Assembly (NCBI GenBank): GCA_950097015.1
Contig: CATNEN010000014.1
Span: forward strand, 310,001 to 374,000
Source of the DNA: Macrostomum hystrix
Lineage: Eukaryota; Animalia; Platyhelminthes
Reading direction: 5' to 3'
DNA: 64,000 bases
The notes beneath the pieces were generated by a model. It was given only the letters and a program-made list of their open reading frames with translations. It ran no database searches and had not been told where the DNA came from. A program made the translations under genes and the position numbers. Shown in pieces: positions 6,332 to 58,300 of this stretch. Each line of letters begins with the position of its first letter. Position 1 is the first letter of the stretch.

Positions 6332-6907
6332 CCAGCCATATCTGGTAGCCAGACATTGGGCACTGGATTGCTGATAGATGTGATTCAGTAGTATTCAGGT
6401 CAACCAGCCAAATCTGGTAGCCAGACATTGGGCACTGGATTGCTGATAGATGTGATTCAGTAGTATTCAGGTCAACCAGCTAAATCTGGTAGCCAGACAT
6501 TGGGCACTGGATTGCTGATAGATGTGATTCAGTAGTATTCAGGTCAACCAGCCATATCTGGTAGCCAGACATTGGGCACTGGATTGCTGATAGATGTGAT
6601 TCAGTAGTATTCAGGTCAACCAGCCAAATCTGGTAGCCAGACATTGGGCACTGGATTGCTGATAGATGTGATTCAGTAGTATTCAGGTCAACCAGCCAAA
6701 TCTGGTAGCCAGACATTGGGCACTGGATTGCTGATAGATGTGATTCAGTAGTATTCAGGTCAACCAGCCAAATCTGGTAGCCAGACATTGGGCACTGGAT
6801 TGCTGATAGATGTGATTCAGTAGTATTCAGGTCAACCAGCCAAATCTGGTAGCCAGACATTGGGCACTGGATTGCTGATAGATGTGATTTATTAGTATTC
6901 AGTAGTA
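6332..6907. repeat. Tandem repeat, 72-bp unit, about 8 copies
   Basis: Unit CCAGCCAAATCTGGTAGCCAGACATTGGGCACTGGATTGCTGATAGATGTGATTCAGTAGTATTCAGGTCAA at 72-bp spacing; source of spurious ORF 6480-6956. Confidence 0.95.
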
Positions 6908-6985
6908 TTCGCGCCGAAACTGCGCCAACTCGCGGGCAAGTACAGCCAGGTGGCATTCGTCAAGCTGGAAGTTGATAAGATTCGG
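6903..6985 (+). other. Candidate thioredoxin-like exon (helix 2 to strand 3 region, no CxxC found)
   Basis: Translates VFAPKLRQLAGKYSQVAFVKLEVDKIR, resembling the segment after WCGPC in thioredoxins. GC-rich, flanked by TTCAG and GTGAGT. No convincing upstream active-site exon found. Confidence 0.45.
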
Positions 6986-7032
6986 GTGAGTGAGATTCTA
7001 GCATCAACCCGAACTGTCCGCTTGCAGCCGAC

Positions 7033-7377
7033 ATGCCGCAGCTGACTCTGAACACCAACGTGTCTGGTAGCCACATTGACAGCCAGCTGCTGCGGGACCT
7101 CACGGACCTGCTGGCCAAGCAGCTGGGCAAGCCGGACACTTACTGCACCGTTCACATCTGCCCCGACCAGCGCATGGCTTTCGGCGGCACTGAAGACCCC
7201 TGCGGCCACGCCACCCTCCTGTCCCTCGGCGGCCTTAGTGACAGCCTCAACCGCGGCATCTCCAAAGCCCTAGCCGAGTTCTTCAGTGCACGTCTGGGCA
7301 TTCCGCCCGCCCGATGCTACATCCGCTTTGTTGACTGTCAGCGGCACGAGCTCGGCTGGAACGGCGGCACATTTTGA
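7033..7377 (+). CDS. MIF: Macrophage migration inhibitory factor / D-dopachrome tautomerase family protein
   Basis: Single-exon 114 aa. Starts MPQLTLNTNV (Pro-1), contains LGKP, MAFGGTEDPC and ends GWNGGTF, all typical of the MIF family. Confidence 0.92.
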   Translation: MPQLTLNTNVSGSHIDSQLLRDLTDLLAKQLGKPDTYCTVHICPDQRMAFGGTEDPCGHATLLSLGGLSDSLNRGISKALAEFFSARLGIPPARCYIRFVDCQRHELGWNGGTF

Positions 7378-8218
7378 GCTGCTTTGCGATCATTGAGTTC
7401 ATTATAATGGATCAATGTTACCGAGTACATTCAATTATGGAGCCCTGCAATTCTGGTTTGAGCGTCAATTAAAGAAAAAAATAGCGTTTCATTGGGATTT
7501 TGTCCCTATAATTATCCATGTACATATTGTACACCATGTACTGAATGCCAGTCCGACTGTTGTCACATACTTTACTTTTGTATTTAGTTCACCCTTAGGA
7601 AGCGTATTCGCTTGCAAGAATGAGAGCTAATTGTTAAATTATGATTAGTGATTAAATAATAAACTGCAGTTATGCTTTTTGTTGGGCAATATGCTATCCT
7701 AGTTCCCCAGGTAGTTAGTCTAGGCATTTTCCAAGACAAAGCACAGCAGGCAGCATCCATAGTCACCCGTAATGCACTGCTATACGCACTTAAAAATCCA
7801 CTGTATTGCGGCGCTATGAACTCCTCTATGCGTACATTATTCTTCTAAGTCTATGCCATTTCGTTCTCTAGTTCTTGTTATTGCACTGTTTGCTATTGTG
7901 GCTGATTTGGCTTCGGCTCCACCAACTGAAATAAATAGTCTGATAACTTACACGACAAGTATTTCTGCTTATCTCTGTTCAGTCTCTATATTTTATTGGC
8001 TTTATGTACTATTAATTATAGATCAAGCAGTAAATCAGCTTCCAAACTTCATGCTGTAGTCTGTAGTTATTACTAGCGGATGTGTCACTAGCTGTACATC
8101 TGGCCCTAGGTGTAACTTGTAAATCTTCTGCATCAGCTGCAGGCATTCATTCTCGAAGCATAGCAGCTCATTGACAGTTTTGTATGTAAATCTCCACCGC
8201 CATACATTTTGCTTGCAG

Positions 8219-9100
8219 GCTGCATTCAGGCAAAAGAAGAAGAAGCAACAGAAGCGCCGCGCTGTCCAGCAGCGGCAGCTGCGGTCCAGCAGCGGCAACC
8301 CAGCCGCAGTCCCGGGCCGCCCAGCTCCATGCGGTGACTTCCTCGGCCTACCGTGGCGCGAGGAGGCGCAGCTGCGCAAGGCGCTTATCCTCAGTCTGCG
8401 CGATGGCCGCCCGGTGAGCCGCCGAACTGTTGAGCGCTCAATGACCGCTTCAGCACCTGCAGTCCTCTCCTCAGCTGCACCTGCTTCCACCAAGCCGTCA
8501 GCACCTGCAGCGAGAAGTCCGCGCCTTCTGCCGCAGCCCCCGCCCCCGCCTGAACTGCGTCTGGACCCCAACACTGGCAGGCCTGTCTCTACCGTCGCCT
8601 TCCTTGACTTTCTCTGCTGTTATCGGTCAACGGCCTCAGCTGCCTCCGCCGCAGTGCCAATTCGGCTACGCTGGCTTGCACTGCCGCCCAGCCTCCGCAG
8701 GATGAAGCAGCGCGTACCATCACAACAGTTGCCACTGACGCCGTTGTCTCTAGCGCCGAGGCAAAGCCAAGCACGTAGCCCGCTCTCGGTTGATACAGCT
8801 CCAGAGATCCCAACCAATCCCCAGCGCCCTGAAACTCAGCAGCAGACCAATGGCAAGCAAGCTCACCGTCAGGGCAATGGCCACGTCAACGGCCATTGTG
8901 AGTCGTTGCATCTTCAGCATCAGCGACAGCAGCAGCAGCGAGTGGCTGCTGCAGGCAGGGCCAAGCGTCGCGCTCTGGCAACACTGAGGGCTGCGGCTGC
9001 CAGCTGCGCTGTACCGGAGAAACGGCAGACAGCAGCAGCGCCAACCACGGCGGCTCCTCACCAGATGCAGCGACGCAGTGGCCGTCTTGCAGCGGCGTGA
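8219..9100 (+). CDS. JARID2 N-terminus-like protein (UIM plus PRC2-binding helix; no Jmj/ARID domains); start codon unresolved
   Basis: [20 protein letters not shown] (8345-8404) resembles JARID2 [45 protein letters not shown] (to about 8630) resembles JARID2 LLPPP..KPKTEDFLTFLCLRGS. Acceptor TTGCAG ends at 8218; stop TGA 9098-9100. Confidence 0.6.
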   Translation, partial: [293 protein letters not shown]

Positions 9101-9913
9101 GCCACTAGGTTGAGCTGGTCGCTTTACTTTTTTATGCCCAGAGCTGGCTAATCATTGTCTGGTACATTCAAACTGGTGCTGTAGAAGCTGGCAGCTGAGA
9201 AAAAGCTTCTAGGTAGTTTAACCAATTAGTTTAACCATTTAACCAATCATGACATTTAACCTATAGTTGATTAAATGAACTATAGGCTGCTGCAGCCTGG
9301 TCATTATGTTATGATTTTGTAACTGCTGTCTTGTTTTTGTGACTCGGTTTATTTCTATTATAATTTCGTTTCAATAGCGTTTGCTCTGCTTTTTAATCGA
9401 CGACCAATAGATCTTCTTATTTCCTTTTTTCGCAACTCAGGTCGCCTATGTTGTACATTGTACTTTGTACATATGTTATAATGCGGCTATTATTTGTTGA
9501 TTGGCTCAGCATCTTCTGGCTGAGTTCTCGCGCACTGCTCAGATACTCGATGCATCGCATTTTGTTTGCGCGTCTCTCTTCTCTTTGATTTCCTGTTTAT
9601 GTAACTATTTAATTTATAACCTCTTATCGACTGTTTGCACTAAATACAAGCTGTAGAATTGCTTTTTTGTCCAACGTTTCGTTTTAGGCAAACCAAACAG
9701 GTAACTGGACTTCATTGTTTTCTACACTAGAATTTTATCCGCTACTCTGAACTGTAAGATAATAATAGTTGTGGAATACTTAGTCTCTGTGGCCTTCTGC
9801 ATGCTCGTTTGCATTTTCCATTCCAAAGCGCTCATCAAATTTTTGTTCGGCCTGCGCTGACGTGTCTTTGAACATCGCATTGAATAGCTCGCGCCCTCGC
9901 CCACAGCCAGCCA

Positions 9914-12360
9914 ATGTCTGCCGATGTCGTGGAAAGTTTGGTCGAAGGTCTCTCGCACACTCAGCTGGGTGATCCAGACTCCGGCTCCGAGGATGTCGAT
10001 GCTCCGGCTTCCGCTGATGGCCGGCTGCTGAGCTTTGCCGACCGTGGGCTAAAGCTGGACACTGCCGAGACCGCTGCCGAGGTGACTGCCGCGCTGGCAG
10101 CTGGCGATCCTGACCTTGCTGCTCTCGACCTCTCCGGAAACACGGTCGGCGTTGCCGCCGCTGTAACCATCGGGGCTGCTCTTGCGCGGCACGCGCGCAG
10201 CCTGCGCCGCCTGCTGTGGAAGGACACCTTCACCGGACGCCTCAAGACAGAGATCGGGCCCGCGTTGACGGCCATGACCCGTCCACTTGCCCTGCCAGAC
10301 TCTGGTGCCAACCTCATCGAGATCGACCTATGCGACATCGCCTTCGGCCCCAACGGTGTTGTCGGTGTCACCGACCTGCTGGCTTCACCGGCCTGCTTCT
10401 CCCTCCGCGTGCTGCGCATGAACAACGAGGGCCTTGGCCATCAAGGCTGTCGCCTTCTCGCTGACGCCCTCGGCCGGGGCATCGACGCCAGCGAAGCAGC
10501 AGGCCGGCCACTTCGGCTGCGAGAATTTTCTGCTGGACGCAACCGACTTGAGAATGACGGAGTCACCATGCTTGCTGCCCCGCTTAGCCGTATGGCCAGC
10601 CTGCGCAAACTGGAGCTCTACCAAGATGGCATCGGTATCCACGGACCCGAGGGTGCTCAGCAGCTCGCCGCCATCGTGGCCGCCAATCCGCGCCTACGCT
10701 GCCTTAACCTGTCCGACAACAGCATCAAGCCGGATGGGGCTCGTCTTCTAGCTGACACTTTGCGCCGGCTGCCACACCTCACCGAGCTCAACCTTGCCGA
10801 CTGCCTGCTGCTGAGTGAGGGTGCTCAGGTAGGGCCTGTTTTTGTCTAAGCTTAAGGAGTGTTCAGGATTTGTGCTGCATTAATTTCCATCTCTAGTTTG
10901 TATTTATTGCTGTCTGTTGTCTGTAGCCATTACCGTCTGTAGTCTGTAGCCATTAGCATCTGTAGTCTGTAGCCATTAGCATCTGTAGTCTGTTGTCATT
11001 ACCATTGCATTGCTTCAGTGCACCCAGCTGTTTAATGGGTACCAGCTCGGGTAATTGTGTGTGAGTGTGGCATTCCCCAAAGTTCAGTCATTGGACTGAT
11101 ATAAAAAGCCTTTATAAGCGGTGCGCAATAGCTGTGGCTGTGCAGTCTGTTGCACAGATGGCCTGACTGGGGCAGGTGTAATACATTTTAGTAATAATAA
11201 TAATAACTGTTATCGCTTTTTAGGCCATCGCCGACGCCCTTGACGAGGCCCCGTGTAAAAATTTACGAGAACTCGTCCTGAGTGGCAACGAGATCAACAA
11301 AGACGTGGCACTGGCAGTGGCAGCGGCTGCGGCCGGTAAGCCTAGCCTACGTCGGTTGGACCTGAACGCCAACATGATCGGCGCTGAAGGTATCGAGCTA
11401 ATTCGTCAACATGTCCACGCTTCTGGCGGAGCAGAACTGGCCTCTTTCTCTGATGATGAAGGCGAGGCCGACGGCGAGGATGATAACGACGATAATGACG
11501 AGGGTGCAGCCTACGGAGAGGAGGCAGCCGAGGACGATGAAGATGAGGTCGAAGCCGCGACTGCTGGTCTATCCATCGGCGCCGGCACCGGAAACCGCAG
11601 CCTGTTTGACAACCTGCCAGCTACATCGCTGTCAGGCTGCAGCATCTTTGGCGGCTCGGCAGCTTCGAGGCCCGCACCCAGCACAGGATCAGGCAGTGGG
11701 GTCGTGGCTTTCAGCTTCAAAGCTGCCGCGGTGACATCAGCCGACAAGTCCGCATCTACGCCATCGTCTGAGGCGGGACTGCCGCTGCTGCGGCCCAGCC
11801 GGCTCTCCGCTGTCGGCCAGTCTGATGCCGAGTCCGCAGCGGCAACGTCGCTTGTGGACCGCCTGCTAACCTCGCCGGCTACGTTCCAGCTCGGTGCCAA
11901 CGACCTGACAGCTGTCGGTCCAGAACCCGGGCCACGCTTGCTGCGCGCTGCTCTGGCTGCTCCCGACCTGCCCGATCGCTGTCAGCGGCTGGTGGCTGGG
12001 GCCTTGGCCATGTGCCTGCAGGCCGACACTCCTCAGGCGGAAATGGCGGCAGCCGGCCTGCTGCAGGCGGCACTGCAGCTGAAGCCGGTTGTGCCAGGCG
12101 GCTGGGTTCAGGCTGTGCTCACCGAATGCGGCCTCATCAAGTGCGAACGCCTGCGTAACCGGCGCCGGCCCTGCGACCTGGCGCGCACGGCACCATTTTG
12201 GCGCGCTTTGGGCCGCGCGCTAACAAGCGTTGGCGACACTGCATCAGCTGACCAGCGGCGCTGTCTTGCTGCGTGTCTGGATGGCCTATGGCCTCGTGGA
12301 GACGCGTCAGCCGCCGCTAGCGCCAAGCAGAGTCTTGTAGGCGCCCTCACCGCCCTCTAG
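9914..12360 (+). CDS. RANGAP1: Ran GTPase-activating protein 1
   Basis: Exons 9914-10828 and 11224-12360 (phase 0). LRRs with LSGNTVG, DTFTGRLKTEI, AFGPNG, GRNRLENDG; acidic tract; C-terminal GLIKCE matching the RanGAP1 SUMO site GLLKSE. Confidence 0.93.
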
Positions 12361-15870: not shown

Positions 15871-18225
15871 TGGTACAGCTGGCTCACCCACATAACTGTC
15901 CACAGCTGGCTCTCCCACATAACAGTGTCCACAGCTGGCTTCTCCCACATAACAGTGTCCACAGCTGGCTCTCCCTCATAACAGTGTCCACAGCTGGCTT
16001 CTCCCACATAACAGTGTCCACAGCTGGCTCTCCCGTATAACAGTGTCCACAGCTGGCTCACCCACATAACTGTCCACAGCTGGCTCTCCCTCATAACAGT
16101 GTCCACAGCTGGCTTCTCCCACATAACAGTGTCCACAGCTGGCTCTCCCTCATAACAGTGTCCACAGCTGGCTCTCCCTCATAACAGTGTCCACAGCTGG
16201 CTTCTCCCACATAACAGTGTCCACAGCTGGCTTCTCCCACATAACAGTGTCCACAGCTGGCTTCTCCCACATAACAGTGTCCCCAGCTGGCTCTCCCTCA
16301 TAACAGTGTCCACAGCTGGCTTCTCCCACATAACAATGTCCACAGCTGGCTCTCCCACATAACAGTGTCGACAGCTGGCTTCTCCCACATAAGAGTGTCC
16401 ACAGCTGGCTTCTCCCACATAACAGTGTCCACAGCTGGCTCTCCCTCATAACAGTGTCCACAGCTGGCTTCTCCCACATAACAGTGTCCACAGCTGGCTT
16501 CTCCCACATAACAGTGTCCACAGCTGGCTCTCCCACATAACAGTGTCCACAGCTGGCTCTCCCACATAACAGTGTCCACAGCTGGCTCTCCAACATAACA
16601 GTGTCCCCAGCTGGCTTCTCCCACATAACAGTGTCCAAAGCTGGCTTCTCCCACATAAGTGTCCACAGCTGGCTTCTCCCACATAACAGTGTCCACAGCT
16701 GGCTTCTCCCACATAACAGTGTCCCCAGCTGGCTCTCCCACATAACAGTGTCCACAGCTGGCTTCTCCCACATAACAGTGTCGACAGCTGGCTCTCCCAC
16801 ATAACAGTGTCGACAGCTGGCTTCTCCCACATAACAGTGTCCACAGCTGGCTTCTCCCACATAACAGTGTCCACAGCTAGCTCTCCCACATAACAGTGTC
16901 CACAGCTAGCTCTCCCACATAACAGTGTCCCCAGCTGGCTCTCCCACATAACAGTGTCCACAGCTGGCTCTCCCACATAACAGTGTCCACAGCTAGCTCT
17001 CCCACATAAGAGTGTCCACAGCTGGCTCTCCCACATAACAGTGTCCACAGCTGGCTCTCCCACATAACAGTGTCCACAGCTGGCTCTCCCACATAACAGT
17101 GTCCACAGCTGGCTTCTCCCACATAACAGTGTCCACAGCTGGCTTCTCCCACATAACAGTGTCCACAGCTAGCTCTCCCACATAACAGTGTCCCCAGCTG
17201 GCTCTCCCACATAACAGTGTCCACAGCTGGCTCTCCCACATAACAGTGTCCACAGCTAGCTCTCCCACATAAGAGTGTCCACAGCTGGCTCTCCCACATA
17301 ACAGTGTCCACAGCTAGCTCTCCCACATAAGAGTGTCCACAGCTGGCTTCTCCCACATAACAGTGTCCACAGCTGGCTTCTCCCACATAACAGTGTCCAC
17401 AGCTAGCTCTCCCACATAACAGTGTCCCCAGCTGGCTCTCCCACATAACAGTGTCCACAGCTGGCTCTCCCACATAACAGTGTCCACAGCTAGCTCTCCC
17501 ACATAAGAGTGTCCACAGCTGGCTCTCCCACATAACAGTGTCCCCAGCTGGCTCTCCCACATAACAGTGTCCACAGCTAGCTCTCCCACATAAGAGTGTC
17601 CACAGCTGGCTTCTCCCACATAACAGTGTCCACAGCTGGCTTCTCCCACATAACAGTGTCCACAGCTGGCTTCTCCCACATAACAGTGTCCACAGCTAGC
17701 TCTCCCACATAAGAGTGTCCACAGCTGGCTTCTCCCACATAACAGTGTCCACAGCTGGCTTCTCCCACATAACAGTGTCCACAGCTGGCTTCTCCCACAT
17801 AACAGTGTCCACAGCTGGCTCTCCCACATAACAGTGTCAACAGCTGGCTTCTCCCACATAACAGTGTCCACAGCTGGCTTCTCCCACATAACAGTGTCCA
17901 CAGCTGGCTCTCCCACATAACAGTGTCCACAGCTGGCTTCTCCCACATAACAGTGTCCCCAGCTGGCTCTCCCACATAACAGTGTCCACAGCTGGCTCTC
18001 CCACATAACAGTGTCCACAGCTGGCTTCTCCCACATAACAGTGTCCACAGCTGGCTCTCCCACATAACAGTGTCCACAGCTGGCTTCTCCCACATAACAG
18101 TGTCCACAGCTGGCTTCTCCCACATAACAGTGTCCACAGCTGGCTCTCCCACATAACAGTGTCCACAGCTGGCTTCTCCCACATAACAGTGTCCCCAGCT
18201 GGCTCTCCCACATAACAGTGTCCAC
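15868..18225. repeat. Minisatellite, 29/30-bp unit, about 2.35 kb (roughly 80 copies)
   Basis: Unit CCCACATAACAGTGTCCACAGCTGGCT(T)CT with variants; ends 9 bp before the Rab paralog B ATG; source of many spurious ORFs. Confidence 0.97.
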
Positions 18226-39210: not shown

Positions 39211-41105
39211 GTCTTTGTAATTCAATGTGTTGCAGTTTCATATAATATCTATTGATTCTTGATGTTAGTTTGAAAAAAAATTTCTTGCCTATAAGGCAAT
39301 GCCCCACTACTAGCCATGGCCACCATGTCATAGGCCTACCCTACTTCCCTGCCCTACAACTGTGACACCTCCACTGTGCTAGGCCTATACCATGCTATAA
39401 CTTAGTTGCCATACTCGCATGCTATATTCCACCAAACCATGCCACCCCATCACATGCCAGAGTCTTCTTACTTAGCTACTACCCTTGCATCAGAGTCTAG
39501 TATTGTATGCCCCACCAATCTGAAATTTCGAAAACACAAGACATGTTTGCAAAAGTGTCATTTTTCCTAGAAGGAGATTATGTAGTCTGTTTTGCTATTT
39601 TTTATGCTAAGAGCAAGATTAAATAGTAGGCCTAAATAGAGCACAAATTTTCATTCTAGACTTTCACTTAACAGAGGACAAAACTTCAGCATATGGTGTA
39701 AACTAGGCCCCCTTAATATTAAGAAAAAATCTAGGCCAAAAAGAACAAAAAGTCTCTATTAAAAACTTTCTAACAATGTCTATATATATGTAGTCAAGAT
39801 GCTTTTATCAATCTTGAAAGTCAAATTTGTACCTATTCTCTTTGTTTAAATGCACTAAATATTGCTTATATAACATTTTATAAATATTCTTTAGAATTCA
39901 TTCACTTTAACAAACTTTTTTGTGTATAACAATGATTGCAATTTCTGTCAGACAAATTAACTTGCCAGTGTGGCATACAAGCCAGTAATACAGTTGTGCT
40001 GAAATAGAAAGTGGCCTGGAAGAAGTGTTCCAACGTGTTAGTTCTTTTCTCTGTTCAAGATTGAGGTTGTGACCCTCCAGGTGAGCCCTGAGGACTGAAA
40101 GTGAGAAACCAGTGAAAGCCTTAGAAGGAGACCAATCATCCTATAAAGAGTTGCTACCATTAGAGTGTTAGACCCGCAAAAGATAAGTATTGTGTAGTAT
40201 TTAGAGTTAAAATGGCTCTTTTCAGGGCCACCAGCCTAAAGCATAGGGAAATTCATGCAGAACTAAGAGTGAAAGAAGTAGTAAGATCAGCCTGAGTAAT
40301 ACACTACCAAGAGAGAGAAATAAAGAGTGTTAAGCCTTGTTACATGTATATAAGTGTGTTTCTTTAGTTATGCACAAAATGCTTGGTTCAAATGATACCA
40401 TAGTCCTAGGTTATATGTATTTATGCAATTTGCCTGAATAAATAAACTTTCAGCTTCCTGTACAATAAGTGCAAGATTATTATTCTTTCCTTCTTATTTA
40501 ATCCGGCTCTAGCATATAACTTTGTCAACTTAACCTTCAATTTAAAAAATTGGCTAACACAACTCAATTTCAAATTTGATTTATTTCACTTCTAATACAA
40601 TTGTAGGCTATTGGCTAAAAACTTGGGGTCTGAGTTTTAGCCTCTATTGGCAGCTATATTTATACACTACTTAAGGGAAAACACAGAAAAGTTAACCAAA
40701 GACAAAAATAAAAAAATTGTTTAGCAGCAATTAAATTTAAGACTATACATTATTAGTGAAACTGTGCCAGCCTCATATATATATGTATATATATATGCTA
40801 ATGTTTGATTTATTGAAAATATTTTTTAGCTAATTAATTAGCTAATGTCAATACTACTAACTATATTTTGCCTACTCCTTTTATTTCATTTTCACCTATA
40901 AAATGTTATATTGAATATAAAAAATATGCCAAACATAAATAAAAATTTGTTAAATGAATTCCTTTGAGTAAAAATTCTCCCTTTTCCCATTGTACATGTT
41001 ATGAATATGAGCACTGAATGTCTGGACTTGTGAATCAGACAGTGTACCAATTTTATATCATTTACCTTCACTAAAAAGTCGGAGTGTTCTCTAGATTAAT
41101 TTGGT

Positions 41106-41668
41106 ATGCATCCCTCTCCTCTATCCCTTCTCTTCTCTATGCATCCCTCTCCTCTATCCCTCCTCTTCTCTATGCATCCCTCTCTATCCCTCCTCTTCTC
41201 TATGCATCCCTCTCCTCTATCCCTTCTCTTCTCTATGCATCCCTCTCTATCCCTCCTCTTCTCTATGCATCCCTCTCCTCTATCCCTCCTCTTCTCTATG
41301 CATCCCTCTCCTCTATCCCTCCTCTTCTCTATGCATCCCTCTCCTCTCCTCTTCTCTATGCATCCCTCTCTATCCCTCCTCTTCTCTATGCATCCCTCTC
41401 CTCTCCTCTCCTCTTCTCTATGCATCCCTCTCTCCTCTCCTCTTCTCTATGCATCCCTCTCCTCTCCTCTCCTCTTCTCTATGCATCCCTCTCCTCTCCT
41501 CTCCTCTTCTCTATGCATCCCTCTCCTCTCCTCTCCTCTTCTCTATGCATCCCTCTCCTCTCCTCTCCTCTTCTCTATGCATCCCTCTCCTCTCCTCTCC
41601 TCTTCTCTATGCATCCCTCTCCTCTCCTCTCCTCTTCTCTATGCATCCCTCTCCTCTCCTCTCCTCTA
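41106..41668. repeat. Pyrimidine-rich minisatellite, 25-32-bp unit
   Basis: CTATGCATCC(CTCTC)nTCTT repeated about 19 times; purine/pyrimidine strand asymmetry; source of spurious ORFs. Confidence 0.95.
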
Positions 41669-42381
41669 GACTATATGGGCCCTATGCCAAAGCCTTTTTG
41701 GAATGAACAGGTTACACTAATATGTAAAAATAGCAATAAAGCAAGTAAAGATAAAATACTGAAAATTGATATACAAATTGATATCAATTAATATAATATG
41801 TAATATTATCAATTGTCTAAGGATTATTACGAGTACATCTTAAACACCACCTAATTTTCAAACCCAGCAAATTATAGTACATAATTCTTAAATGGGTGAC
41901 ATCAAGCAATGAGGAATTGAGTGTCCTCAAGAGCACAAATTTGGGTTTTGTTGGTTGGTCCCTTGGTTTGAGATTTGAAGTCCTGACCAGTTAGTCAGAA
42001 GTCAAAATCTGATAATTATGCTACAGCCTGCCTGAATTGTTATATCTATATTTAGATATTTAAATCTATCAACAATTACCTAAATTCACATTTAAAATCA
42101 TATTAAATTGTTACAGGACTGGTCATATAAGCTCTTTGGTTGTCTGCTGCATGTTTGAGTTATTAATAAGCCAGTGTTGAAATCAGTAAAATATATGCAC
42201 AATGGGCTTTATGAGTCTTGACAAAAACATGCTGCCATCTTTATAATTATCAGTATTCAGAAGTTAACAGTTTTCGTGTTCTAGTGATTATATATATTAT
42301 TGTTTACTTGTTGATGTGCATTATTGGTTTTACCTGATAATCCTATTAGACAGTTTGCTTTGTCCCACAGCAGTTGCAGGC

Positions 42382-43754: not shown

Positions 43755-44750
43755 CCCTCAATTAGCCTGCTGCACAAGGGGTATCAGGCCATGACCCTCA
43801 ATTAGCCTGCTGCACAAGGGGTATCAGGCCATGACCCTCAATTAGCCTGCTGCACAAGGGGTATCAGGCCATGACCCTCAATTAGCCTGCTGCACAAGGG
43901 GGTATCAGGCCATGACCCTCAATTAGCCTGCTGCACAAGGGGTATCAGGCCATGACCCTCAATTAGCCTGCTGCACAAGGGGTATCAGGCCATGACCCTC
44001 AATTAGCCTGCTGCACAAGGGGTATCAGGCCATGACCCTCAATTAGCCTGCTGCACAAGGGGGTATCAGGCCATGACGCTCAATTAGCCTGCTGCACAAG
44101 GGGTATCAGGCCATGACCCTCAATTAGCCTGCTGCACAAGGGGTATCAGGCCATGACGCTCAATTAGCCTGCTGCACAAGGGGGTATCAGGCCATGACGC
44201 TCAATTAGCCTGCTGCACAAGGGGTATCAGGCCATGACCCTCAATTACCCTGCTGCACAAGGGTTATCAGGCCATGACCCTCAATTAGCCTGCTGCACAA
44301 GGGGTATCAGGCCATGACCCTCAATTAGCCTGCTGCACAAGGGGTATCAGGCCATGACCCTCAATTAGCCTGCTGCACAAGGGGTATCAGGCCATGACCC
44401 TCAATTAGCCTGCTGCACAAGGGGTATCAGGCCATGACCCTCAATTAGCCTGCTGCACAAGGGGTATCAGGCCATGACCCTCAATTACCCTGCTGCACAA
44501 GGGGTATCAGGCCATGACGCTCAATTACCCTACTGCACAGGGGGTATCAGGCCATGACGCTCAATTACCCTGCTGCACAAGGGGTATCAGGCCATAAAGA
44601 CTCTTAATTGCCCCAGCTGCACAAGGGGTATCAGGCCATGACCCTCAATTACCCTGCTGCACAAGGGGTATCAGGCCATAAAGACCCTCAATTACCACAG
44701 CTGCACAAGGGGTATCAGGCCATAAAGACCCTTAATTGCCCTAGCTGCAC
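43755..44750. repeat. Minisatellite, 40-bp unit, about 24 copies, upstream of SUZ12
   Basis: CCTCAATTAGCCTGCTGCACAAGGGGTATCAGGCCATGAC, degenerating toward the 3' end. Confidence 0.96.
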
Positions 44751-44860
44751 AAAGGGTATTATGCCATTAAGACCCATCACCAGAAGAGGCAGTATGCCAA
44801 AGATACGGCACCAGAGGGGCAAGTAAGCCATTTTCTTCCCATGTGGCCCGCAGCGCAGCC

Positions 44861-47175
44861 ATGGTGAAAGCCGGTCAGCAGCAGCGCCAGTCAGCTGGGT
44901 CTTCTGATCCGGTGGTCCTGCCGAGGCCGCCCTCGAGCACTTCACTGAGCAGTCTGGCTTCGTCAGCTGGAGCCGGCGGTGGCAACGGCAAGGTCGCATC
45001 AAACGCGCCGCCATCAGTCAAAACTGAGCAAGCCGTGGCCAAGTCGGAGCCGCCAACCGAAGAGGCGCTGGCGCACGCAGCATTTATTGAGGCTCTGTCC
45101 CCACCTACGCACCTGTACCGCTACCTAGCTATCCGTCACCGGTCCTCGCCTATCTTCCTGGCCCGCAATCTGGCCTACTTAGGCCGACAGTCCGGCCGAG
45201 CTGGAGGCCGCAGCCTGGCTGAGTCGACCGCAGCTCTGGCCGGCCGGCCTGTGGCGGCCCCGCCGGATTCGCCGGCAGAGGCGCCGGCCTGGGATCTTCC
45301 GCGTAATGCTTCGCTGGAGCTGCGCTTCTCCGGCTTCTTCGACTCAAACCGGGAGAAAGAGTGGGTCACAGTGTCCGCCAGTCTGGACCTGTCCGTTGTG
45401 CACCGCTGCTTCAACCGGCGCAAGTCAACCCGTTCCAGCGGACAGCGCCATCTAGCGCGGCTGTCCTTGGAGTGCAATCCGCATCCGCGTTCCCAGAGAC
45501 TCGCGCCCCGCGAGCAGCAGCGCAACGGCCACGGCGAAGCTGAGACGGAGGCCGACTTCACCGTATTGAACAAAGACCTGCGGGACCCGCAGGCCAACAG
45601 GATTGTACAGTCACATCTGCTGCTGCGGATCAGCGCTAAGGAGAAGCGCAACTACTCGAAGATGTACGACTCGCCACCCGGTGCCAGGAAGTCGCACAAG
45701 AAGGACGTAGCCGAGTATCCCGTGCAGTACTGCGCTGTGCTGCCGCTGTTCATTCACAGCCGCACCGAGGCCTGCACGGACAGCGGCACCGGTCTGGCTT
45801 CGCCTTTGCAGCTGTGCACGGGCGAGTACGAGTGCCGTCTGGAGTGCCTGGGCGCCGAGGAGCCCGCCGATCTGGTAAACGCGTCTGCTCGCGTGCTGCA
45901 GCAGTGGCACGCCGCCAGGTTTCGGCAGGCCTCCACAGAGGCTGGCGAGTACGAGCGCTGGCCAGTGGTTCGATTCTCTGCCCGCTGGACTGGAGTCACT
46001 GGCGAAGCGGCTGGCGTAGAGCCGCCGCTGCCCGAGCCTCAGCCGCAGCAACAGCAGGAGCAGCAGCTGCAACAGAAATCACGCAAGCGACAGTCGAGCG
46101 ATTCGGCTAGCGGGAAACAGGCGGCGGGATTCAAGATGGCCCCCGAAACGATTGGCTGCGGCGAGTGGCGTGTCGTTTACAGCTTCTTTCACGCTGGCCG
46201 CTGCCGCCAGTACACTGAGGTAGGCTGACTGCTTGTTTACTGCATCAAACTTTGCTGGAAATCTTAAGTTTTTGAACCCAAGTATTTGTACTTTAGACAT
46301 CTATTGGTGATAAGCATGCTTCAATCTCAGTTGATTTATTCCGTAAAGCCTGTACTCTGGGCCTCAAGTATTATAGAAGTAGTCTGCAACCTATCATTCT
46401 CACTGCCATTCACTTCCAGGTCGACAGCCTCCGCTGCCCCTGGTGCGACCTAGACTGCCGCCGTGCCGCCGCCCTTTTGTGCCACCTGCGCGCTTGCCAT
46501 TCTCGTCTTTCTTTCGCCAGTGTCGGCGAGAACTCCACGGCGAAGCGGCGACGCCTCAATCTCGAGGTACGACTTAACACCGACTACAATGGCGGCTACG
46601 AGGGCGACCCGGCCTGTTTGTTCCGACCCACCAGGTTCGAACCCGCACCCTTTCCCGCCCGCCGACTGCCCTTCACGCACCTGATCCACTGGCGCGGCTC
46701 AACGTGCTCCGCTCAGCAGACGCTCGTGGCCAATCCGCGGCCTCTGATCGCTGGTCACACCCGGCAATACTTCCACTCGCAAACCTGCGTGCCTCTACTG
46801 CCCCAGGAGATTGACATCGACTCTGAGGACGAGGTCGCGCCGGACTGGCAGCGCCAGCTCTACGCTCGAAACCTGGAGGACTTCACCGACGTCAACGACG
46901 GCGAGAAGGCAGTAATGATGGCGTGGAACCTGCACCTCATGACCTGGGAGGGCGGCCTAGTCACCGGCCAGCACCAGCTGCCACAGCTTTGCAACGCATT
47001 CATTGACCGCTGCGGCTCAGACCTGGTGCGGCGTGGCCTGCGTGGCAATCTGCTGCTCCACCTGGGCAGCCTCTGCAACTACGGCCTGCTGCGGCCTGAC
47101 CTGGCATTCGAGCTGCTGTTGCGCGTCAACCGGTTCACAGACTGCAACCATCAGCAGGCGACAGCAAATGCTTGA
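44861..47175 (+). CDS. SUZ12: Polycomb protein SUZ12
   Basis: Exons 44861-46219 and 46420-47175 (phase 0). PTHLYRYL..PIFLARNLAYL, C2H2 finger CPWCDLDC..HLRACH, VEFS box GHTRQYFHSQTC..DSEDE..EDFTDVNDGEKAVMMAWNLH. Confidence 0.93.
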
Positions 47176-55374: not shown

Positions 55375-58300
55375 ATTGACTCTGCAGAGATTGAAGCATC
55401 CGGGACGCTGTCTGGGTTGGAGACGCCGGGCTCCGTGGTCCTGGTGAAGTGCGTCTGCAGTGGGCAGACGCTGCAGCTGGGGCTTTTTCCAAGGCCGCTG
55501 CGGTTAACATCGCTACTGGAGAAAATTCGCCAGAAATTCGATGGCCTCGAGCGGCTTTTCTACCGCATGCCGGACGCCATGTGTGGCATTGTGCCTGTGC
55601 TGGAGCAACGCGACCTGGACATGGTCACGCGCATCTCGGACGACCACTTCGGCCGGAACAGCCTCCACCTACTGCTGGACCCGCCTATTGGCGGCGACGA
55701 CCAGCCCGCACAGCGTGAGTGCTCGAAAGCTGCCTTGCTAATTAGACTGCGATAATCACCTGCCAGCCACTGCAATCGCGATCGACTAGCATCACATAAA
55801 ATATCCTGCTACCTGTCAGTATGCATCTTGCAATTGCAATTTTCACATTTGAGGCTAGTCACTCTCGTTACTGGTTGGTCAGGGAAGCCAAAACAGGACA
55901 AATTAGTCACTCTCGTTACTGGTTGGTCAGGGAAGCCAAAACAGGACAAATTAGTCACTCTCGTTACTGGTTGGTCAGGGAAGCCAAAACAGGACAAATT
56001 AGTCACTCTCGTTACTGGTTGGTCAGGGAAGCCAAAACAGGACAAATTAGTCACTCTCGTTACTGGTTGGTCAGGGAAGCCAAAACAGGACAAATTAGTC
56101 ACTCTCGTTACTGGTTGGTCAGGGAAGCCAAAACAGGACAAATTAGTCACTCTCGTTACTGGTTGGTCAGGGAAGCCAAAACAGGACAAATTAGTCACTC
56201 TCGTTACTGGTTGGTCAGGGAAGCCAAAACAGGACAAATTAGTCACTCTCGTTACTGGTTGGTCAGGGAAGCCAAAACAGGACAAATTAGTCACTCTCGT
56301 TACTGGTTGGTCAGGGAAGCCAAAACAGGACAAATTAGTCACTCTCGTTACTGGTTGGTCAGGGAAGCCAAAACAGGACAAATTAGTCACTCTCGTTACT
56401 GGTTGGTCAGGGAAGCCAAAACAGGACAAATTAGTCACTCTCGTTACTGGTTGGTCAGGGAAGCCAAAACAGGACAAATTAGTCACTCTCGTTACTGGTT
56501 GGTCAGGGAAGCCAAAACAGGACAAATTAGTCACTCTCGTTACTGGTTGGTCAGGGAAGCCAAAACAGGACAAATCGACTGCCCGACTGACGAAAAGCTG
56601 ACGAGTATAGTAGATACAGAGGGAATCAATTATTTCGACAGAAAAAAAACTTTTTTAAGACTTAGTTAACCTACCTTTAGTTCGCTTAAAAGAGCTCTTT
56701 TAAAGAAAGCTCAGCTCAGTGTGTGCTGCTTCGCTACTGAATATCAATCGGGAACTCATAATTCCAGCCTACTATGTACGCTCTTATTTGGCATTTTGCA
56801 CCGTCCACCATCGTGTGCTGCTTCGCTACTGAATATCAATCGGGAACTCATAATCGGGCATCAGGAAAAAGTAACGCTGGGCTGCCGGTTTTTGCCTCAG
56901 GTATTTTCTTGAAGGTAGAACTTGGTGGGAATCCCATCCACATGTTCCTGCAACACCTCATTGGTCAGGCTGCTTAACATGGAGTGGTTCGAGGTCGGAG
57001 CCAAAGAGCTTTGCGTCCCAGAACTGCCAGTCTAACAACCGGCGTCGCCCTAGCCCTTTAACATGAAGTTTGCAAATCACAGCTGCCGATGTGAGATAGG
57101 CCCAGGGGCTGGTCAGGGAGGGCATAGGCGCCATTCATCAGGTCCTCCACAAGGGTCTGAATGAAACTGGAAACCCGGTAGTGAATCAGACTCTTGTCCT
57201 TTGTGGATTTCACGAGCTTGCTTGAGTTGTCAAATGATGTACTTTTAACTGCGCTCAGTCATAGGCCTGAAGTTGACGCAGATTTTCCTGAGATTGTCGC
57301 AGAATGGTGACTCATCCTAACTGCACCGAGTCTATCGGGTAGGTAAAATTCACTCATGCTTGAGTGATCAATTCAATCATTCACTCAAAGCGGCCTGCAG
57401 TCTGGCTCTGAATACGCGGTGGGCCCGACGTCCAGCTAATGTCGATCGATGAGTCTGAACCCCTACCTCCATCCTCCTTAATGTCCTCCATCACAAGCGT
57501 ACATTACCCATGAACAAAAATTCCCTACTGTGTCAGTAATTTTTATGACCTGTCAAAATAAACTTCCCGTCAGGCTCTTCATTGTAAATATCACACAGTG
57601 AAGCGAGAAGCTGCTCACTTCCAGTTTATTGAAGCGAACCCGCAGCAAGCAATGCAGCGATTTCGAATCTAAGTACGAGGGGTATGAACCACTTTCCACT
57701 TTAGCAACGGCCACGCCTGTGAATTTTAAACAAGAGGAGCTTCTGGGCCATGGTAGCTTCGGCGCTGTTTACCGCTGTGTTGACCTGGACACAGGCCGCA
57801 TCTTTTCCATGAAAGTAGTCCAGCTCGAAGCCAACGACGATCGAAGCGCCCAAAAGGTGACAGCCTTGGAGGCGAAGTTCCAGCTGCTGCGCAATATCAA
57901 GCACGAATGCGTGGTGCAGTACTTCGGCTGCCACAGGGAGCCAACCCGTCTGTGCGTCTTCATGGAGTACATGGACGGCGGAAGCGTTCGGGACTTTATC
58001 ATCGAAAGTGGCCCTCTGCGCGAAGTTCTGGCTAGAAAGTACACCAGGATGGTTTTGCATGGACTAAGTTTCCTGCATGACAACAGCATCGTGCACAGTG
58101 ATATTAAATGTGAGTCATCAGGTTTGAGTTGGGTTGCTGGGACTCTATCGGATATCCTATATTACCCAAGCCAGAATTTATCTAATATAAACCGATTTGC
58201 ATATATATGTACAAATTGTCATTCTGAGAAATAAATATTCACGCACTGCTGTTGCTACCGAATCAAATATTTCTACCGCTGTTTATCATCACCCAGGTGC

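Follow-up and report, generated by a model that had tools for sequence, protein, structure and literature searches.

Mini-JARID2, a natural N-terminus-only JARID2-like candidate PRC2 cofactor present in two copies in the flatworm Macrostomum hystrix, which has no detectable full-length JARID2

A 64,000-nucleotide stretch of the Macrostomum hystrix genome (contig C14:310001-374000, hereafter the window) contains a short gene, here named mini-JARID2, whose product resembles the N-terminal module of vertebrate JARID2. Sequence comparisons suggest that it is a natural N-terminus-only JARID2-like candidate cofactor of PRC2, with two copies in an animal without detectable full-length JARID2. It is quite probable that the protein derives from the N-terminus of JARID2 or at any rate works in the same way. 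On balance we favour the fuller reading that mini-JARID2 is a truncated descendant of the JARID2 N-terminus that has lost the JmjN-ARID-JmjC-zinc-finger half and would link PRC2 to H2A-ubiquitinated nucleosomes. A minimal PRC2-to-H2Aub adaptor appears to be the best reading of its candidate function.

The gene is carried by a single exon on the forward strand. Its parts, in window coordinates, are the following.

8171..9100, +: open reading frame from the open reading frame list, with no in-frame ATG near its start; translation of 309 residues
8213..8218, +: trans-splice acceptor ttgcag, read from the sequence; spliced leader (SL) joined at 8218/8219
8219..9100, +: mini-JARID2 coding sequence, single exon; SL-donated ATG plus 293 codons, giving 294 residues; stop codon 9098-9100
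9101..9675, +: mini-JARID2 3' untranslated region, ~575 nt; transcript end at ~9675 according to contig X5 rec17

Transcript evidence came from contigs of public sequencing runs placed on window positions 6800-11800. The runs are not labelled as RNA; they contain the SL and a removed intron and are therefore RNA. Contig X5 rec17 aligns to the genome without a gap from 8218 to 9675, and contigs X6 rec23 and X2 rec9 are concordant with it. Contigs from three runs start at 8218 with additional 5' letters, which in run X1 (ATTTATTGCAT) are the 3' end of the 35-nt Macrostomum SL and in runs X5 and X6 number 22 and 15, respectively. The last G of the SL is the G of the acceptor, and since the SL ends in ATG and position 8219 is codon position 1, the SL supplies the start codon of mini-JARID2. 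A variant polyadenylation hexamer, AATACA, can be read ~27 nt 5' of the transcript end. No contig over 6800-11800 shows an intron within the message or a joint leaving the gene. The locus is an expressed, intron-less, SL trans-spliced gene of M. hystrix. An initial annotation, made from the letters of the window, had described a stand-alone product, and this description holds: the SL is at 8218, the RNA is collinear to ~9675 with no onward splicing, and both the stop codon and the C-terminal blocks are conserved in Macrostomum lignano. The same contigs, covering 8218-~9675 without a joint, answer the points of transcription and onward splicing that the annotation had listed to be checked.

Five segments of the encoded protein stand out by conservation, predicted structure or likeness to JARID2.

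8228..8260, +: N-terminal basic run, 11 residues, identical in M. lignano; predicted helix at residues 4-17
8336..8404, +: JARID2-type ubiquitin-interacting motif (UIM), 23 residues (aa 40-62), assigned from PDB matches, the UIM pattern and a predicted helix at residues 46-62
8405..8443, +: Arg-rich tail behind the UIM, 13 residues, identical in M. lignano
8537..8713, +: SUZ12-binding (TR)-like block (aa 107-165), with a 14-residue core at 8588-8629 followed by a conserved 13-residue stretch; predicted helix at residues 125-138
8936..9004, +: C-terminal basic helix, 23 residues, ratio of non-synonymous to synonymous substitution rates (dN/dS) 0.10; within the predicted helix at residues 226-262

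The initial annotation had reported two motifs in JARID2 order, and these are found at 8336-8404 and 8588-8629, with a match beyond chance in the PDB searches and shuffles described below. For comparison, the N-terminus of vertebrate JARID2 (residues 1-~170) comprises the UIM (24-41), a basic segment (42-57), K116 and the TR or SUZ12-binding region (147-165). By direct reading, the segment 8336..8404 agrees with the classical pattern L-x-x-A-x-x-x-S-x-x-acidic, and mini-JARID2 carries the UIM consensus acidic-acidic-x-hydrophobic-x-x-Ala-x-x-x-Ser-x-x-acidic on a single helix. The N-terminal basic run is likely a nuclear localisation or DNA-contact segment, and the Arg-rich tail is a candidate contact for the H2A-H2B acidic patch, judging by the position of human JARID2 42-57. 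Also as annotated, the protein has no Jmj, ARID or zinc-finger domain: the 309-residue translation had no Pfam match even at E<=1, and the models for JmjN, ARID, JmjC, the C5HC2 zinc finger and the Pfam UIM (PF02809) were all without a match. An equivalent of the K116 RKF motif, of which the annotation had seen no clear sign, is indeed lacking, with K116 opposite an alanine in the ungapped alignment and the RKF stretch in an insertion relative to Macrostomum in the profile alignment. The linker holds no conserved RK motif.

Searches of the PDB (177,635 distinct sequences, phmmer and profile) link these motifs to JARID2. With the UIM block as phmmer query, the four best matches were human JARID2 residues 17-45 (E=0.045), and the UIM of Vps27 followed at E=1.5 (17.2 bits for JARID2 versus 12.5 bits for Vps27). 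The 132-residue core matched JARID2 alone, in the collinear stretches 16-61 and 94-167 (E=0.086), and a three-sequence Macrostomum profile also matched JARID2 alone, in one alignment over residues 19-168 (E=0.05). In both the core and the profile searches, the block at 8537..8713 was aligned to human JARID2 ~140-167 (KTEDFLTFLCLRGS).

The likeness was also scored with two literature-defined human motif strings, a UIM 20-mer and a TR 14-mer, against 20,000 composition-preserving shuffles of each protein.

Window copy, human UIM 20-mer: score 62; shuffles with mean 9.5, standard deviation 4.4 and maximum 37
Window copy, human TR 14-mer: score 28; reached by 9 of 20,000 shuffles (p ~4.5e-4)
Paralogue, human UIM 20-mer: score 51; shuffle maximum 38
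Paralogue, human TR 14-mer: score 45; shuffle maximum 33, with 0 of 20,000 shuffles reaching it

By our own Gumbel extrapolation, the UIM match corresponds to ~1e-7 per protein of such size, and the occurrence of both motifs in order would then be far below one expected case per proteome, with boundaries that were picked post hoc. The TR core of the paralogue, RTGDFLDFLCYHGA, is identical to the human sequence at 8 of 14 residues and is closer to it than is the window copy.

Conservation in the related species M. lignano falls on the same motifs. Its orthologue, P0001 (301 residues, 57-65% identity), is annotated as a 'hypothetical protein, partial', because the start codon is donated by the SL. 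P0001 has the same acceptor, the same frame and the same end point, with the C-terminal blocks in frame, and synteny is kept through the MIF, mini-JARID2, leucine-rich repeat/RanGAP and Arf genes. A word-index protein search, the length window of which excludes full-length JARID2, found the M. lignano orthologue alone. Between the two species dS is ~0.75-1.4 and the overall dN/dS of mini-JARID2 is 0.22, distributed as follows.

UIM-like block (42 codons, 8318-8443): 16 synonymous and 0 non-synonymous changes; dN/dS 0
TR-like block (59 codons): 31 synonymous and 7 non-synonymous changes; dN/dS 0.04
C-terminal basic helix (23 codons): 11 synonymous and 4 non-synonymous changes; dN/dS 0.10
Linker and middle region (31 and 59 codons): 23/33 and 32/64 synonymous/non-synonymous changes; dN 0.75-0.87, near neutral

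The two JARID2-type motifs are the sole parts under strong purifying selection.

The second copy in the M. hystrix genome lies at contig C3:15336058-15336912 on the minus strand (L034:1051-1905, minus strand) and is 33% identical overall. It starts behind the acceptor cttccag, in frame with the SL ATG. The paralogue retains NFLGLLWSEEVQLRRALLMSMRE in the UIM and PELRLDPGTGLPVRTGDFLDFLCYHGA...LALPPS in the TR block and almost nothing else, and its linker consists of tandem copies of a ~12-residue unit (SAPSGGSIVGSA and variants). The UIM-like and TR-like blocks, frozen between species and retained in the paralogue, thus form the core on which the function of this small gene family depends. Weak further 'paralogue' matches on contigs C7, C12 and C35 were rejected as repeats or low complexity.

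An AlphaFold2 model based on the two-species alignment is mostly disordered (mean predicted local distance difference test score, pLDDT, 47), with helices at residues 4-17, 46-62, 68-75, 125-138 and 226-262. The C-terminal basic helix is its most confident part (block-mean pLDDT ~66-73). A predicted disordered protein with helices at the motifs is as would be expected for a JARID2 N-terminus.

Genome scans with JmjC, ARID, JmjN and zf-C5HC2 models covered the whole assembly of 220,453,370 bases in 42 contigs (PMC10468722), and a canonical JmjN-ARID-JmjC JARID2 was not found in this one assembly. JmjN, ARID, JmjC and zf-C5HC2 occur together at two loci only, C25 ~382-387 kb (minus strand) and C30 ~2,007.8-2,011.5 kb (plus strand), which are KDM5 (Lid-type) paralogues because they have a PHD finger and a JmjC domain with the HIEDH active site. 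The same two loci account for every zf-C5HC2 match in the genome and are the only places where ARID matches adjoin JmjN/JmjC matches; the four JmjN loci are these two KDM5 genes and two KDM4-type genes. Other ARID and JmjC loci that were inspected are ARID4-like (on C26), KDM4-like and KDM3-like, and the remaining ARID and JmjC matches were set aside solely for having no adjoining JmjN or ARID match. There is no JmjC match within the window. The ARID4-like neighbourhood, C26:536250-539501 (L014), contains a long perfect array of a 30-nt repeat that is open in several frames (FSASITTLMN repeats).

Polycomb partners are present in the same genome, which holds an EZH2-type CXC locus and four RAWUL/PRC1 loci in addition to SUZ12, so that both Polycomb marks can plausibly be made. 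SUZ12 itself lies within the window.

44861..47172, +: SUZ12, VEFS-Box E=4.9e-34; proposed partner, given for context only

The initial annotation had placed a SUZ12 gene 36 kb downstream of mini-JARID2. The location is correct, and it is not evidence of function. The first SUZ12 exon runs from the ZnB helix through the C2 domain, and the next open frame contains the second zinc-finger half and the VEFS box; each exon served as a query of its own. In a PDB search the ZnB helix aligned well to human SUZ12, and the M. lignano orthologue, P0002, has Zn_SUZ12 and VEFS. A complex prediction for M. lignano SUZ12 40-545 with P0001 100-190 scored 0.00 when folded from single sequences without alignments, a result that favours neither binding nor its absence. 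Window positions 44400-44760, immediately 5' of the SUZ12 start, hold a tandem array of ~60-nt units (ctcaattagcctgctgcacaaggggtatcaggccatgacc...).

In mouse cells, the N-terminal region of JARID2 alone binds PRC2 and restores H2AK119u1-dependent PRC2 recruitment, for which the UIM is required; the sufficiency of this module has so far been shown only by truncation constructs in cultured cells (PMC5133711). Cryo-EM places JARID2 24-41 (the UIM) on ubiquitin and DNA and the basic segment 42-57 on the acidic patch, so that the UIM and the segment behind it sit between ubiquitin and acidic patch (10.1101/2020.04.20.049213). The TR domain docks on SUZ12 ZnB/Zn (PMC9255955). Mini-JARID2 shares with the vertebrate N-terminus a near-N-terminal UIM with a G-[IL]-P-W-x-E-E lead-in and, in the same order and in a disordered context, an FLxFLC motif ~80-130 residues past the UIM. 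Unlike JARID2, it is a separate gene product of 294 residues without JmjN, ARID, JmjC or a C5HC2 zinc finger. Its linker is ~50 residues shorter and lacks the K116 RKF, its UIM carries the classical Ala at a position that is Val in human JARID2, and it has an extra conserved C-terminal basic helix and exists as two paralogues.

Three other systems help to place it. Delta-N JARID2, a mammalian form reported to lack the PRC2-interacting N-terminus (PMC6356158), shows that the halves of JARID2 can exist and act apart. It is the mirror image of mini-JARID2, keeping the Jumonji half and losing the PRC2 module, whereas mini-JARID2 keeps the PRC2 module only; Delta-N JARID2 is a variant form of the full-length protein, whereas mini-JARID2 is a gene of its own. 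The PRC2.1 accessory protein EPOP is short and mostly disordered like mini-JARID2, and is proposed to dock on an overlapping SUZ12 ZnB/Zn surface (PMC9255955). No sequence match between EPOP and mini-JARID2 appeared in any of the searches. EPOP has no UIM and links to Elongin BC instead of H2Aub. Classical single UIMs, such as that of Vps27 (PDB 1q0v), have the pattern hydrophobic-x-x-Ala-x-x-x-Ser-x-x-acidic in common with mini-JARID2, but neither its GLPW lead-in nor the TR-like motif further along characterises endocytic UIM proteins.

Several results weigh against descent from JARID2 and the role in PRC2 recruitment that would go with it. The E-values of the unbiased searches are borderline (0.045-0.087 against 177,635 PDB sequences), the TR block by itself had no match in the PDB, and a whole-protein three-sequence profile lost JARID2 there, because Ala-rich matches to phosphoheptose isomerase swamped it. 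The motif boundaries in the shuffle test were picked after the match was seen. The protein has no Pfam match and no K116 motif, and the Arg-rich tail behind the UIM is not retained in the paralogue. That a canonical JARID2 is missing is concluded from one assembly, whose BUSCO completeness is ~84-85% (PMC10468722). Finally, a profile search of 1.84 billion representative proteins (E<=0.001) returned the M. lignano orthologue alone and nothing outside Macrostomum, and therefore no intermediate sequences tie mini-JARID2 to JARID2 and homology rests on the motifs. At ~17 bits, however, the JARID2 match is below the reach of that threshold, so this null is no evidence against the link. The proposed link has good support at the level of the motifs and is not database-wide significant.

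An alternative that we consider unlikely, though it has to be taken seriously, is that mini-JARID2 is an unrelated, lineage-specific disordered nuclear protein in which a generic UIM and a hydrophobic FLxFLC arose by chance or convergence, with partners other than PRC2, for example in another ubiquitin-dependent chromatin or repair pathway. The lack of relatives outside Macrostomum among the 1.84 billion proteins and of any Pfam match, PDB E-values of only ~0.05 and the unmatched TR block would all fit such a protein. The UIM consensus is shared, so the UIM score is partly generic, with the Vps27 UIM among the matches, and look-alikes in a protein atlas were weak and unnamed, all below 0.9. 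Chance would nevertheless have to account for a core that matches JARID2 alone in the PDB, with both motifs ordered near the N-terminus, and for a G-[IL]-P-W-x-E-E lead-in that is common to JARID2 and outside the generic UIM pattern. It would also have to explain a paralogue whose TR core is identical to the human one at 8 of 14 residues (score 45 versus a shuffle maximum of 33), and the fact that residues common with human JARID2 lie in the most constrained blocks.

Two further alternatives accept the JARID2 origin. Mini-JARID2 could be a brake that occupies SUZ12 ZnB/Zn without the K116 lysine and either excludes EPOP-like/PRC2.1 factors or leaves PRC2 recruited but non-stimulated. The missing RKF equivalent fits this, JARID2 and EPOP are reported to be mutually exclusive on an overlapping SUZ12 surface (PMC9255955), and two paralogues with different tails could tune occupancy. 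There is, however, no detectable full-length JARID2 in the assembly to compete with, and strict conservation of the UIM points to a role in positive targeting; a conserved lysine ~30 residues past the motif (RRMKQR; SVKF in the paralogue) could, speculatively, still be an EED ligand. We regard such a brake as improbable. The suggestion in the initial annotation of a competitor of full-length JARID2 is not supported, since in the assembly JmjN, ARID, JmjC and zf-C5HC2 come together only at the two KDM5 loci. The annotation had also raised half of a split gene, which would be either a JARID2 N-terminus with its Jmj/ARID counterpart encoded elsewhere or an exon that splices onward to Jmj exons. 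A consensus donor-like GTGAGT within the open reading frame at 8889 and a possibly incomplete assembly favour this, but the RNA contigs pass straight through 8889 to the stop codon and the 3' untranslated region without a joint that leaves the gene, and in-frame coding conservation reaches the stop codon shared with M. lignano. The proposed check for a separate JmjN-ARID-JmjC gene lacking the N-terminus yielded only the two KDM5 genes, with their PHD fingers and HIEDH motifs, and the other inspected ARID and JmjC loci are ARID4-, KDM4- and KDM3-like. Onward splicing from 8889 was rejected on these grounds, and a split gene or separate Jmj half, largely refuted by RNA contigs, genome scans and locus inspection, is very improbable.

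Under the favoured reading of mini-JARID2 as a minimal adaptor, it would be a nuclear protein whose FLDFLC block docks on the SUZ12 ZnB/Zn platform, making it a PRC2.2-type accessory subunit. The UIM helix would bind the ubiquitin that PRC1 places on nucleosomes as H2AK119ub1, and the Arg-rich tail of the window copy may add a nucleosome contact. Both contacts together would tether PRC2 to PRC1-marked chromatin. Without the K116 'RKF' lysine, PRC2 would be recruited or retained and not allosterically activated via EED; a role of the conserved lysine ~30 residues behind the dock (in RRMKQR in the window copy and SVKF in the paralogue) as an EED ligand and substitute for K116 is speculative. The short N-terminal module may be all that M. 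hystrix needs to couple the two Polycomb complexes. It is possible, with a likelihood that we place slightly short of even, that in the Macrostomum lineage full-length JARID2 gave way to two small stand-alone genes in which only the UIM and the SUZ12-docking motif remain.

Mini-JARID2 lies between two other genes on the same strand. MIF (7027-7957), mini-JARID2 (8218-~9675) and RanGAP1 (from 9906) are arranged head to tail with spacers of ~230-260 nt, and each has its own SL. The letters CGAAGACTCAATTTATTGCAT precede 7027 and AGACTCAATTTATTGCAT precede 9906, and the loose 5' letters at 7027, 8218 and 9906 match the 3' part of the published 35-nt Macrostomum SL, CGGTCTCTTACTGCGAAGACTCAATTTATTGCATG, which ends in ...CTCAATTTATTGCATG (PMC8629364). 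None of the contigs on 6800-11800 spans two of the three genes. This arrangement is consistent with the SL-resolved operons reported from M. lignano (PMC8629364). The positions given initially for the stop of the open reading frame (9100, the stop codon being 9098-9100) and the start of RanGAP1 (9914) are right: RanGAP1 matches the RanGAP1 chain 9b62_G at E=5e-60 and has its own SL at 9906. Its intron at 10827-11221 is the only joint among the contigs in this 5-kb stretch. Within it, a ~40-nt piece (11006-11046) is matched by many unrelated contigs with differing flanks (summed depth 97-127) and probably belongs to a dispersed, transcribed repeat. Loose contig ends at 8939 and a small X2 contig that also touches 11307-11327 fall in a CAG run and have the appearance of cross-matches between repeats.

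Elsewhere in the window, positions 16001-18000 and 40001-42000 have GC skews of -0.37 and -0.32, and many long minus-strand open frames overlap at ~16-18 kb. The strong skew and the overlapping frames suggest low-complexity or repeat sequence. The open reading frame 55821-56666 gave unrelated Pfam 'hits' (arenavirus glycoprotein and T4 gp5 among them) without an individual matched stretch, which is typical of a low-complexity repeat and not of a real domain.

What the Jumonji/ARID half contributes to JARID2 is a matter of continuing debate, as is the question of whether the N-terminal PRC2 module suffices in an organism. A JARID2 that is naturally confined to its N-terminus and kept under selection, in an animal with no detectable full-length gene, would be a ready-made separation-of-function case. 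The UIM and the FLxFLC dock would stand out as the core that evolution cannot dispense with, and the K116 switch would look optional. In annotated genomes, genes of this kind appear 'partial' because their start codon comes from the SL. M. lignano, which carries a mini-JARID2 orthologue, already serves as a model of regeneration and stem cells. If two stand-alone genes did replace full-length JARID2, PRC1-to-PRC2 coupling in an animal would be run by a disordered adaptor of ~290 residues. Neither the Jumonji/ARID half nor the K116 allosteric switch would then be needed in vivo, and the two paralogues, only one of which has the Arg-rich tail, would give rise to alternative PRC2.2-like complexes.

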